Below, piece after piece: positions 51,501 to 58,478 of a DNA stretch of 63,226 nt (positions within the stretch are counted from its first letter, which is position 1; every line of letters starts with the position of its first letter). The stretch is from NCBI GenBank assembly GCA_002269645.1, contig NIVC01004041.1, positions 1 to 63,226 of the forward strand. The letters are read 5' to 3'. The translations under genes and the position numbers were made by a program. The notes beneath the pieces were generated by a model. The model had not been told where the DNA came from. It saw only the letters and a program-made list of their open reading frames with translations, and searched no databases. Origin of the DNA: Macrostomum lignano. Lineage: Eukaryota.

Positions 51501-54500
51501 TGTCCCCTATTTCATAATTCGTTCATCTCATGATTTGGTTCTGTAATGTATTTAGCTCGCTAATCTTATATTCGGCTATAAAATTAATTAGTAGCTTATT
51601 TTTCAGATGAGATTAGTGCAATTTATATCTATCTATCTATCTATCTACCTATCTATCTATCTATCTATCTATCTATCTATCTATCTATCTATCTATCTAT
51701 CTATCTATCTATCTATCTATCTATCTATCTATCTATCTATCTATCTCTCTATCTATCTATATATCTATCTATCTATCTATCTATCTATCTATCTATCTAT
51801 CTATCTATCTATCTATCTATCCATCTATCTATCTATCTATCTATCTATCTATCTCTCTATCTATCTATCTATCTATCTATCTATCTATCTATCTATTTAT
51901 CTATCTATGCAATTTCAGTCTGGCTAAATGCTGTGGGCTCCCAAGACGGTGTGGCCCGTGAAGAGGAGCTGAAGCGGTCATTGCCTTTTTGCGATTTGGA
52001 GACCGGCACTAAAAATCGAGGTAGCAACACAAATATAATGCCAATGATTTTAAAGAGTTGCTTCGATAGTAGTAAATAGGCACAGCGCTATTGTTCATTG
52101 AATTCCCGTTACAGTGGTCCAACGCGATCCAATCACCGGACTGGGCCTGCTAGGTCGCGAGTTCGATGCTTTTTCGGGTCGTTCGAGATCACACTCGTCT
52201 CGGGATGGAGGTGAGCTTCTGTCTGTCTGTCTGTCTGTCTGTCTGTCTGTCTGTCTGTCTGTCTGTCTGTCTGTCTGTCTGTCTGTCTGTCTGTCTGTCT
52301 GTCTGTCTGTCTGTCTGTCTGGCTGTCTGTCTGTCTGTCTGTCTGTTTGTCTGTCTGTCTGTCTGTCTGCCTGTCTGTCTGTCTGTCTGTCTGTTTGTTT
52401 GTCTGTCTGTCTGTCTGTCTGTCTGTCTGTCTGTCTGTCTGTCTGTCTGTCTGTCTGTCTGTCTGTCTGTCTGTCTGTCTGTCTGTCTGTCTGTCTGTCT
52501 GTCTGTCTGTCTGTCTGTCTGTCTGTCTGTCTGTCTGTCTGTCTGTCTGTCTGTCTGTCTGTCTGTCTGTCTGTCTGTCTGTCTGTCTGTCTGTCTGTCT
52601 GTCTGTCTGTCTGTCTGTCTGTAACAGCCACTGCAGTCAGTCCCGCCGCCAACCCATGTCCCAGGCGACCGCAATCCAATTCTGGGCCAGGGCAATCTGG
52701 GCGCAGAGAGCAACGGCTTTCGCAGGCAGTTCAGCATTCGCTGCCGCGGAGAATGTAAGCATTCCTGTACACGTTTAGCCACTGTGGATATCTAAACCTG
52801 GTCAAATTGACTGGTAAGGGTCCTGATCCCCTGATTATACCCATCCGTTAGATCGCAATCCAACTGATCTGAGCGGCAGCGACTCCAAAGAGCCGGAGTT
52901 GGACGTTTTGAGACCAAATAACCGACCAGCTAAAACCATCGTTCGACAGGGTAAGCCAGTTACTATCGATATAATATTTATAATGTGCGATTGGTACTTG
53001 TATATGTGTATTATGTGTATTATAATACATGCTAGGGATTGTAGCCTAGTGTTCGGACTTACGAATTGAAGGTCGGGGCTTCGATTCCCGATCCCACTGG
53101 AACAATTTGTATTCTTGAGCAAGACACTGAACTAGCTCTGCATTGCTTCAGTTCATCCAGCTGTAAAATGGGTGCTAGCATTAGCTGGGGTAATTCAGGG
53201 TGTGTGGCGACCCCCCATTCCTTGGACTGAACAGCCGTACGCAGCCTTCAGATGCGCCCCGCTATAGCTGCGGCTGAGCTGTCGGTTGCATATCTGGGCC
53301 AATTGGGGCAGGTGTAATAGTAATAATAATCATTATATTCTCAAGAAATCGTCTGTTTTAGCTTTCTATTTATATTGAAAGTTGCGTTTCTTCACCTCTT
53401 CGCCTCCTTCGATCCAAGGCCATTCAAGACTCAGCTGCAGCATCCTCTCCCTCAGATTACCTGCCCAGTCACCTGGCTGCCTCTGCCTCTTCGCCCCTCA
53501 ACACCACCTTCAAACCGCAGCCTTCGGCACTCCGTCACTGCTCGCAACATGTCCGAATTAAAAAGGAATATCTTTCTCTTCATTAGATCAGAGAGTACTT
53601 GTAACTCTTCTAATCCGTACCCAAATCTCCATGCCTAACTCTCCATTGTCTTCTATTCTCGATCCAAGATTAAGCTTCTCTCCTGCTCCAATAGAATTAA
53701 CCGTCACATTCACCAACTGGTTCTCCATGTGCCTCTTCCCGCCAGGCATCATCAATTTACTCTTCTCGGTGCTAATTTCCATTCCGAATCTCCTGCCAGT
53801 TTCCCGAAGTCTTCCTGTAACCTCCTGCACGGCGTCCGCATCTCCCGGCAGTTTTCCAAGTCTTCCTGTAACCTCCTGCATGGCGTCCGCATCTCCCGGC
53901 AGTTTTCCAAAGTCTTCCTGTAACCTCCTGCATGGCGTCCGCATCTCCCGGCAGTTTCCTGAAGTCTTCCTGTAACCTCCTGCACGGCGTCCGCATCTCC
54001 CGGCAGTTTTCCAAAGTCTTCCTGTAACCTCCTGCATGGCGTCCGCATCCTCCAAGAATGTCAATAATGTCATCAGCAATTCGAAGATCATTTGTTCGCC
54101 TCCCGTGCATCTCACGTCTCCAAAATGACCTTCAAATGATCTGTTCCATGGTTTTTTAAAGAAGCAAGTTGAACAGAACAGGTAAAAGCGGGCATCCTTG
54201 TCGCACATCAACAGTGGCCCGCGGAACAAGTCACTGAACTGTTCACCAGTCAGAACTTAGATTTTGGTCCTTCGCACAAGCTCTTGATCAGAGCAGTTAT
54301 TCATTTCCCAATTTTATACCTGGCCATCGTGTTCCACAGTGCCTCATTCCAGACTATTAAAAGTGCTTTCCGAAAATCTAAGAAGTTGTGACAGATCCGT
54401 TTTTTTCACCGGCTCTTAGTCCAATTCTCAAGGTTGTTATCTAGCGTTCTGATCGATACTTTATTTTTGGATAAATACAGAAATAAAATTTGTTTTGCAG

Positions 54501-57500: not shown

Positions 57501-58478
57501 GCGACTTACGAATAATAAACTACAGTAAATAATTTGCCACTATATATATAACTTGCATCACGAAGTCAATTAGATTTTTAGAAGCTCATCGAAGCCATCG
57601 AGCTCAATGACGTCAGTTCTATTTTTAGCAACATCTACTGAAAGTACATCGCGTCAGATCTATGTTTAGCAGCATCTATTGCAACAGTATGGCGTCAGTT
57701 CTATTTTTAGATACATATAGCAAAACTATGACGAAACTACCCAAACAAACAGTGACGTTAGTAGCTCGTACTATATTTTAGATAAACGCACATATTATCT
57801 ATGCAATTCCATTTTTATCTGTGGTAACAAATCTGAAAACTTTAATGACACCGGTATGGTAAGAAAACCACGCTTTTAAAACTATATGACATCATTTCTA
57901 TTTTGAGACACCGCACAAAGAAGCTAAATGAGGTCAGTTCTATTATTAGAAAAATCTTACCAAAACAATAGGGCATCAGTTTTCTTCTATCGAAAAGTTT
58001 TGTTCCTTAAATAAGAATCTACATCATATTTAGTACGCATAGATATTTACCTGAATTTTGCATTCACAGATCGTCCAAACCCATCAACTGGCGAGAATGT
58101 CAGCAGTTTTGACATCAATCAGGAGCTGCGCAGCGACAGAGCCGGCGATCGTGGCAACGCCGTCAACGTCGATGACACCGGTGCCACCGCTATCGACAGT
58201 GTGGCCGCGGCTGTGGCCCCTGCTGAGGTTCCGGAAGGTGAGAGTTGTTGTCTGTTTTTCCACCTGTCTGCCTGTCTGTCTGTCTGTCTGTCTGTCTGTC
58301 TGTAGGGATGTATGTTTGTCTTAGTGGGTCTGTCTTTTAGTGTGTCAAGATGCCGTGGCTCAGTAATTAACTACATAATTGCTTGTGCAGTCTTTCTGCA
58401 TGTCAAATACATTTTTAACAATTCGATATTCACGACAAACCCTTTTGCACAGGATACGATGAGGAGGAGACGTTCTGA
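48596..58478 (+). CDS. Jupiter-like NP(I/L)TG-repeat protein, probable microtubule-associated protein; ~520 aa, 14 exons
   Basis: Exons: 48596-48733 and 51225-51366 (both tentative), 51919-52020, 52115-52210 (RDPITGLG), 52641-52754 (RNPILGQG), 52852-52950 (RNPTDLSG), 54501-54608 (RDPIAGQG), 55130-55261 ([10 protein letters not shown]), 56238-56309 (RNPLTGED), 56376-56474 (TNPLTGEN), 57093-57269 ([17 protein letters not shown]), 57366-57455 (KNPLTGEN), 58070-58237 (PNPSTGEN), 58453-58478 (GYDEEETF*). All GT-AG and open when joined. The gene structure is better supported than the Jupiter label, which rests on recalled insect Jupiter motifs NPITGLG / NPVTGEGY. Confidence 0.75.
49003..49600. repeat. 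21-bp minisatellite (tcacatcgattcactgatttc)
   Basis: Direct reading; related to the 19-bp array at 47.4-48.3 kb. Confidence 0.95.
50290..51168. repeat. (GATA)n microsatellite, ~880 bp
   Basis: Direct reading. Confidence 0.98.
51625..51908. repeat. (TATC)n microsatellite, ~285 bp
   Basis: Direct reading; reverse complement of the 50290-51168 array. Confidence 0.98.
52217..52621. repeat. (TCTG)n microsatellite
   Basis: Occupies nearly all of intron 52211-52640. Confidence 0.98.
53030..53338 (+). mobile_element. tRNA-derived SINE with CORE-like central domain
   Basis: A-box-like tagcctagtg (53042), B-box-like ttcgattccc (53080), then cttgagcaagacactgaac..cttcagttcatccagctgtaaaatgggt, resembling the MIR/CORE consensus cttgggcaagtcacttaac..cctcagtttcctcatctgtaaaatggg, and an (AAT)n tail. 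Confidence 0.7.
53385..54400 (-). mobile_element. 5'-truncated non-LTR retrotransposon RT relic (RTE-like)
   Basis: Minus-strand fragments [84 protein letters not shown], with stops and frameshifts; internal 51-52-bp unit x4.6 at 53810-54050. Confidence 0.85.
56527..57075. repeat. 23-bp minisatellite (cagctgtcctcagttccctaatc) x~24
   Basis: Direct reading; ends ~15 nt before the 57093 acceptor. Confidence 0.97.
57605..57990. repeat. Highly degenerate ~40-bp repeat (gacgtcagttctatttttagca)
   Basis: The gtcagttctattt core recurs about 7 times. Confidence 0.6.

Follow-up and report, generated by a model that had tools for sequence, protein, structure and literature searches.

What kind of protein is encoded by a tandem array of NP(I/L)TG motifs in the genome of the free-living flatworm Macrostomum lignano, and is it a relative of the microtubule-associated protein Jupiter? 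The question is raised by contig NIVC01004041.1 (GenBank assembly GCA_002269645.1), of which the whole stretch analyzed, positions 1 to 63,226 of the forward strand, is called the window here. An earlier annotation by a model that saw only the DNA letters and their open reading frames (ORFs), referred to below as the sequence-only reading, had placed a candidate for an undescribed Jupiter-related protein at 51919-58478. The Jupiter/JPT family (Pfam PF17054) comprises insect Jupiter and vertebrate JPT1 and JPT2 (HN1, HN1L); its members are widely used as microtubule markers and as cancer biomarkers, and the way they grip the microtubule lattice is only now being worked out. The analysis described here reveals that 48944-58478 (+) is a real protein-coding gene of M. 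lignano. The reading of its product that we favor, by a modest amount, is that of a repeat-expanded, Jupiter/JPT-derived, multivalent microtubule-binding protein.

A search with concatenated candidate exons identified the window's own annotated product, P0003 (BOX15_Mlig027991g2, 392 aa), and the exon boundaries were then fitted until the spliced translation matched P0003 residue for residue. The gene consists of 12 exons and one optional exon, all on the + strand, separated by 11-12 spliceosomal introns that are all in phase 1 and all have GT-AG splice sites. All internal exons have lengths divisible by three, and the predicted product has 392 aa, or 436 aa with the optional exon. The proposal of one spliced gene for a tandem-motif protein is thus borne out by the identity with P0003, and the proposed limits also fit: exon 2 begins exactly at 51919, and the stop codon ends at 58478. 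Exon 1 (48944-48995), with the start codon and a GTGAGT donor, was located by tblastn of P0003 and of P0001, the model of a second genomic copy described below, and by the spliced translation; its peptide is conserved in the paralogue P0004 (MIKSRSAFNMPSNRPRR). The Jupiter-like peptide that the sequence-only reading had taken for exon 1 lies instead in an ORF (about 48596-48754) that precedes the annotated start at 48944 and falls outside the gene model. This ORF has possible phase-1 donors, yet it is absent from all protein models. It has no counterpart at the paralogue locus, and it is not among the 14 best tblastn matches of two JPT-type N-termini to the window, all of which are chance-level and located elsewhere.

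The motif-free exon 2 (51919-52020; 102 nt, phase 1-1) encodes an N-terminal "LPxVDxETGxKNR" segment that is conserved across flatworms. The array begins in exon 3 (52115-52210), where the D codon of copy 1, RDPITGLG, is at 52126; copy 2, RNPILGQG (52673), follows in exon 4 (52665-52754). Exon 5 (52852-52950) contains a degenerate copy, RNPTDLSG, which aligns with RNPIALTGDLGxEVD of the orthologues. Exon 6 (54501-54608) encodes copy 3, RDPIAGQG (54509), within the most conserved block of the family, where R, D, P, I, G, G, F, G, E, W, D, P, Y, and G are invariant in the alignment. Copy 4, RNPITGSG (55135), belongs to the optional exon (55130-55261; 132 nt, phase 1-1), copy 5, RNPLTGED (56258), to exon 7 (56238-56309), and copy 6 (56384) to exon 8 (56376-56474), whose donor, GTTGCA, is weak. 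Exon 9 (57093-57269) is the only one with two motifs, copy 7, SNPLTGEGY (57098), and copy 8 (57194). Copy 9 (57377) is in exon 10 (57366-57455) and copy 10, PNPSTGEN (58078), in exon 11 (58070-58237), the repeat of which is orthologous to the last full repeat in the flatworm and nemertean relatives; exon 12 (58453-58478) ends the protein with ...YDEEETF and the stop codon. Each motif starts 5-20 nt inside its own exon, exon 9 apart. This arrangement, a symmetric phase-1 exon for nearly each repeat unit, fits growth of the array through exon duplication.

When all six frames of the window were scanned with [ND]P[ILVM]TG, seven matches were found, every one of them on the + strand and within 52126-57391; a looser pattern adds the copies at 52673, 54509, and 58078. 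The spliced protein has ten matches to [ND]P[ILS][TLA]G and six to the stricter expression of the sequence-only reading, which had counted about ten copies. The extension that it saw in the later copies is also present, NP[LS]TGEN[CV].S[YF]D[LI] matching three times, in the last three copies. Among 100,000 shuffles of the protein there were never more than two loose-pattern matches, against ten in the real one, and the ten-motif array is far beyond chance. Units of the N-terminal half follow R-[DN]-P-I-x-G-x-G-[DN]-[FL]-G and those of the C-terminal half N-P-L-T-G-E-N-[CV]-x-[ST]-[YF]-x-[IV]-x-x-E-x-[RK], while 87 units taken together give the consensus x-R-x-N-P-L-T-G-E-N-[CV]-x-[TS]-[YF]-x-[VI]-x-x-E-E-[RK]. 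Successive C-terminal motifs are spaced by 28-35 residues, the same in all species compared. The protein is basic (pI 9.0-9.3; K+R 16%), rich in S/T/P/G/N (41%), and poor in hydrophobic residues (18-19%). The AlphaFold2 model, calculated with the family alignment, is domain-free (mean pLDDT 45, pTM 0.15) and has repeats without helices, in which isolated β-bridges bracket some motifs, 7 residues apart. The gene product is accordingly predicted to be an intrinsically disordered basic chain of about ten short linear motifs.

Out of 1.84 billion representative proteins, an exhaustive search with the family profile retrieved only 50 at E up to 0.001, some of which were looked up or read, many shorter fragments being unchecked. 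Those inspected fall into five groups: this flatworm family, a second flatworm family, nemerteans, one beetle, and one bacterial protein. Orthologues of 380-450 aa exist in cestodes (Hymenolepis, Echinococcus, Taenia, Spirometra, and Mesocestoides) and in trematodes (Schistosoma, Fasciola, Clonorchis, Paragonimus, and Echinostoma), the repeat array is also conserved in a monogenean, and M. lignano keeps P0004 as a second paralogue. Across flatworms the arrays align repeat by repeat with invariant N, P, T, and G columns, and individual repeats retain their own signatures from species to species, such as KPYVYxNTVTGEN. The nemertean homologues come from Lineus longissimus and Tubulanus polymorphus (for the latter no genomic locus is on record), and members of the flatworm/nemertean family have 10-13 motif copies. 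Judged from these alignments, multiplication of the motif is ancient, common to Platyhelminthes and Nemertea and older than Macrostomum, and not lineage-specific as had been supposed. The second flatworm family has the N-terminal module in common, followed by TDPITHS units, a single RNPITGEGM..EDY motif, and a long Pro/Lys-rich tail; P0111, P0146-P0152, and P0148 (Schistosoma) belong to it, and a member in the databases is named "Sm65 antigen" of S. mansoni.

The family had been called undescribed, and no paper on it or functional study was found in the searched literature; however, the gene was already annotated, and automatic naming has given two M. lignano UniRef entries of the family the titles "Microtubule-associated protein Jupiter" and "Jupiter microtubule associated homolog 2". 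The identifiers Mlig027991, Mlig025565, and Mlig011212 and, for S. mansoni, Smp_150640 were looked up for expression, and none of them occurs in the searched texts and supplements. Mlig-sperm1, a published flatworm-specific sperm gene, was considered and ruled out, since it is another gene, Mlig020950.

A link to Jupiter is suggested first by the motif itself. The beetle protein found in the profile search (P0051, from Dendroctonus) matches Pfam JUPITER with 31.9 bits, above the gathering cutoff of 27, over its NPVTG region, and its relatives in beetles are annotated Jupiter and have the common motifs RNPVTGNGVSSWD and RNPVTGETY; insect Jupiter thus has the motif, as the sequence-only reading had stated. 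Internal N-P-[IV]-T-G followed by S-aromatic, a trait of insect Jupiter, is present in the window protein in ten copies. A hidden Markov model (HMM) of the flatworm repeat unit also favors likeness, all nine beetle Jupiter proteins outscoring 1000 of 1000 shuffles. In hhalign, flatworm rN.ITGENC.tyD is paired with beetle RNPVTGNGVsSWD.

The second line of evidence runs through Nemertea. The flatworm profile aligns by hhalign with the Lineus isoform P0081 over 109 columns (98% probability, E 6e-14), and the N-terminus of P0081 (MTSTTNSIGLNPDSRNSSRVLNPPGGRVSINLFGGGEP) is 50% identical to human JPT1 over 62 aa (E 1e-9). The human JPT1 sequence used may be wrong in single residues, but it scores 33.6 bits with Pfam JUPITER and is thus a valid N-terminus of the family. 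The Lineus gene, LOC135494118 (P0043, P0069, and P0081), has 14 isoforms in which three alternative first exons, including the JPT1-like MTSTTNS... start and a hydrophobic, membrane-anchor-like start, precede a shared VLNPPGGRVSINLFGGGEP segment.

Several results weigh against descent from Jupiter. Pfam JUPITER has no match up to E 10 in the window protein, the 13 orthologues, the nemertean homologues, or their sub-segments, whereas both positive controls, P0051 and human JPT1, pass. The hhalign comparison with beetle Jupiter covers 13 columns only, with 65% probability, and that of the flatworm profile with JPT1 aligned nothing (0.2% probability). On the JPT-type PPGG motif and the JPT1 C-terminus, the flatworm unit HMM scores below zero. 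In principle, the Lineus link might stem from a fusion of two genes or from an erroneously joined gene model. P0050, a bacterial protein (2384 aa) of Cys-rich repeats with many VTNTLAGESCDSGG copies, reaches E 2e-9 with the family profile; this match is an evident false positive, yet it implies that tandem repeats inflate profile scores here and that the motif could be convergent. Bacterial G5 domains, too, contain the six-residue core NPLTGE; the unit profile matched them in the PDB over 7-8 residues.

The two terminal signatures of JPT proteins were also sought. Searches of the window by tblastn with JPT and Lineus N-termini for S-R-V-L-R-P-P-G-G-G-S returned chance-level matches only, and the C-terminal PPGG(K)xS is not in the window protein, which ends in ...EGYDEEETF. 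In its orthologues and in P0004 the last residues are themselves a motif copy, (Y)N-[IP]-[IL]-T-G-x, placed analogously to the PPGG(K)xS of JPT proteins and different from it as a motif. Equation of the JPT2 motif PPGGK*S with the flatworm motif was tried by a hand alignment (N-P-x-x-G-x-x-x-x-S-F) and, given the HMM score below zero, is kept as no more than a loose analogy. Taken together, the motif, the unit HMM, and the JPT1-like nemertean N-terminus speak for the claimed Jupiter relationship, while Pfam, the 13-column alignment, and the JPT1 comparison speak against it. As far as the motif goes, the idea that one of Jupiter type has been multiplied into an array like that of tau is largely right, and the nemertean link strengthens it. 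The family is Jupiter-like and probably Jupiter-derived, its full membership being doubtful; whereas the gene model, the repeats, their conservation, the identity of the motif with that of insect Jupiter, and the homology to the nemertean protein are observed, and disorder is predicted, common descent with Jupiter/JPT is inferred.

How would such a chain meet the microtubule? In the central-pair microtubules of protists, CFAP213 (FAP213) is an arc-shaped inner protein. In cryo-EM structures of the protist protein, two GYNPITGEY loops occupy the taxane pockets of β-tubulin in adjacent protofilaments (bioRxiv 10.1101/2024.12.02.626492). For JPT2, short PPGGK*S motifs suffice for direct microtubule binding, and the protein is luminal and displaced by paclitaxel (PMC12773733). 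Tau-like proteins and filamentous inner proteins commonly have repeats of ~31 aa, each spanning a single tubulin dimer (PMC10973386; PMC8144581). In the mechanism proposed here, a repeat-expanded offshoot of Jupiter/JPT would act as a multivalent microtubule binder, in which each 28-35-aa unit would dock at a lattice site of its own and the distance of ~30 residues between units would match the ~8-nm dimer repeat of tubulin, as in the repeats of tau, Mn proteins, GFG proteins, and SPM1. The NP(I/L)TGE turn may enter the taxane pocket of β-tubulin on the luminal face; this step is proposed because the NPITGE loops of CFAP213 occupy that pocket, and it would fit the taxane-sensitive, luminal JPT2. 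By these analogies, the flatworm protein may well bind microtubules, with the scales tipped slightly in favor, whereas binding in the taxane pocket or a luminal location is a weaker and tentative suggestion, and the ciliary or sperm-related role raised by the sequence-only reading is a conjecture.

The NP(I/L)TGE core is found in five of the ten window units. The published GYNPITGEY scores 12.2 bits with the unit HMM, and its flanking G-Y and Y are unconserved in the units. CFAP213 was not among the results when PDB sequences were searched: the family profile and a synthetic GYNPITGEY query found nothing, and the unit profile gave chance matches to bacterial G5 domains and a snake PLA2 inhibitor. 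That N-P-[ILV]-T-G-E is an ancient, pan-eukaryotic "key" for the taxane pocket is a speculative extension of the motif comparison that we regard as rather unlikely. If it were true, protist CFAP213 and insect Jupiter would each use the motif twice and the flatworm/nemertean family 10-13 times, and the flatworm protein would be a filamentous inner protein of singlet microtubules, plugging about a dozen taxane pockets. It would also be the animal counterpart of CFAP213, homologues of which occur mainly in protists and were not found in higher eukaryotes by the authors of the structure (bioRxiv 10.1101/2024.12.02.626492), and a natural protein analogue of taxol.

The alternative that survives best, and to which we would give perhaps a minority share of belief, is that of a disordered, multivalent scaffold. 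Its NP(I/L)TG units would bind a different partner that is also repeated, for example a cytoskeletal polymer other than the microtubule, a modular adaptor domain, nucleic acid, or chromatin, and the likeness to Jupiter and CFAP213 would be convergent. The restriction of the Jupiter similarity to about 13 residues, the unmatched Pfam JUPITER, and the occurrence of the motif core in unrelated bacterial proteins would all be expected of convergence, and the basic, disordered chain resembles many nucleic-acid binders. On the other hand, a nemertean homologue carries a JPT-type N-terminus, the insect motif accompanies the Jupiter N-terminus in known microtubule-associated proteins, and the ~30-aa spacing suits lattice binders. 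The known adaptor-binding motifs NPF, DPF/W, and PxxP do not fit the consensus on inspection.

It is improbable, in our estimate, that the repeats fold alone or on self-association into β-hairpins of a G5- or SH3-like kind and form a β-rich fiber or matrix component. This explanation draws on the likeness to bacterial domains: nine of the 13 orthologues score above the cutoff of Pfam TagH_SH3-like (PF22269), although at profile positions 32-49 only (18 of 62), and G5 domains are what the repeat profile matches in the PDB. In addition, the isolated AlphaFold2 β-bridges lie 7 residues apart around several motifs, and the residues after the turn alternate as in a β-strand. However, a pLDDT of 45 does not make for a confident fold, the Pfam matches span a fraction of the bacterial domains, and the linkers are long, basic, and variable. 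No signal-like hydrophobic stretch is visible by eye at the N-terminus (no predictor was used), and the hydrophobic content is low. The window protein itself has no Pfam match to G5, PspC, or TagH SH3-like domains. The G5 likeness is treated here as a chance match of a motif by sequence, and the NPLTGE turn in common with G5 is the likely source both of the PF22269 matches and of the name "Surface protein PspC" which, like "SH2 domain-containing" and others, has been given to many orthologues.

A second genomic copy of the gene locus (L001), 99% identical, is represented by the model P0001. The optional exon is included in P0001 and skipped in P0003, its DNA being identical in both copies, and addition of this exon to the window model raises the identity to P0001 to 435 of 436 residues; the discrepancy likely reflects alternative splicing or inconsistent annotation. 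The remaining difference is at a conserved motif position, codon 58084-58086, which encodes S (NPSTG) in the window and L (NPLTG) in L001. It is the only difference in 1311 coding nt, versus seven in 3363 intronic nt, and these numbers are too few for a test of constraint. A decaying, functionless repeat locus in a microsatellite-rich genome, as might be suspected from the microsatellite-filled introns, the S in place of the conserved L, and the inconsistently used exon, is effectively refuted by the repeat-by-repeat conservation across Platyhelminthes as far as Nemertea, by a frame intact over 12-13 exons with canonical splice sites, and by the two paralogues kept in M. lignano.

The DNA of the window is eukaryotic and rich in micro- and minisatellites, which fill the introns of the gene and crowd its splice sites at 51626-51908, 52218-52622, and 56527-57071. 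A (TATC)n tract ends 10 nt before the acceptor of exon 2, a (TCTG)n tract begins 7 nt past the donor of exon 3 and occupies most of intron 3, and a minisatellite (24 copies of 23 bp) stops 21 nt short of the acceptor of the exon at 57093. Intron 5 contains a 213-aa ORF, 53588-54229 (-), that overlaps a 52-bp tandem repeat (53783-54079), has no Pfam match, and is perhaps what is left of a mobile element.

Upstream of the repeat gene, an exon-like ORF at 37297-37731 (-) matches Pfam PIP5K (phosphatidylinositol phosphate kinase) with 90 bits and therefore marks a neighboring gene on the opposite strand. A six-base tandem repeat at 46043-46792 is open in several frames (GASGAG..., APAPEA..., and ASTRG...). 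The UniRef model P0083 (825 aa, "Protein kinase domain-containing protein") crosses it as (ASTRG)n and joins upstream sequence to the repeat gene; it is a chimeric prediction. At the end of the window, GC-rich ORFs at 62201-62779 (+) and also at 61267-62995 contain DERRNELREFFAAIVNARPPPLPENL and have no Pfam match. Because DERRNELREFFAAIVNARPPPLPENL recurs in the retroelement-like part of the chimeric P0036 (1906 aa), these ORFs are probably a fragment of a retrotransposon.

The identification extends the Jupiter-like repertoire to Spiralia and corrects the labels "Surface protein PspC" and "SH2 domain-containing" on orthologues from Schistosoma, Fasciola, Echinococcus, and Taenia. A natural array in which a candidate binding motif is repeated 10-13 times and has been conserved, each repeat in its place, for hundreds of millions of years offers a tool for mapping the contact between Jupiter/JPT and the lattice. 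With it one could ask directly whether the taxane pocket has a general ligand in NP(I/L)TGE; the interest would be greater if the taxane-pocket reading were true.

Among known systems, the bacterial G5, PspC, and TagH SH3-like modules have the K-N-P-L-T-G-E turn in common with the flatworm units. They are, however, folded cell-wall domains matched over 7-18 residues, whereas the flatworm gene is eukaryotic and intron-rich and its product is predicted to be disordered. Like the flatworm array, tau/MAP2/MAP4, the Mn proteins (MAP6, SAXO, SPM1, and FAP363), and the GFG proteins (EFHB and CFAP77) consist of ~30-residue tandem units in a disordered chain, but their signatures (PGGG in tau, [TS][TS]x4[YF] in Mn, and GFG) differ from NP(I/L)TG, and Pfam gave no match to any of these families. 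The Mn unit [TS]-[TS]-x(4)-[YF] is not in the frequency table of the 87 units, where [TS] and [YF] are adjacent, and there is no Pfam STOP/SAXO match; likewise, PGGG is absent from the protein, the tau-type repeat (PF00418) has no Pfam match, and the spacing alone is similar. CFAP213, likened here through its published motif, has the same N-P-I-T-G-E core, but in two loops of an otherwise different protein, and the tyrosines that flank these loops are mostly missing in the flatworm units. The RNPVTG(N/E)GVSSWD and RNPVTGETY motifs of the beetle proteins are close to the flatworm x-N-P-L-T-G-E-N-[CV]-x-S-[FY]-D units, and RNPITGEGM of the second flatworm family also resembles the insect motifs. 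Both the flatworm protein and Jupiter are built as disordered, basic chains with short motifs, and the S/T/P/G/N content and pI of the former are as in beetle Jupiter. The flatworm protein differs in its 10-12 motif copies over 390-470 aa, compared with two copies over about 150-350 aa in Jupiter, and in having a further module at the N-terminus (LPxVDxETGxKNR... REWDPIxKYxGR), which is missing from Jupiter.

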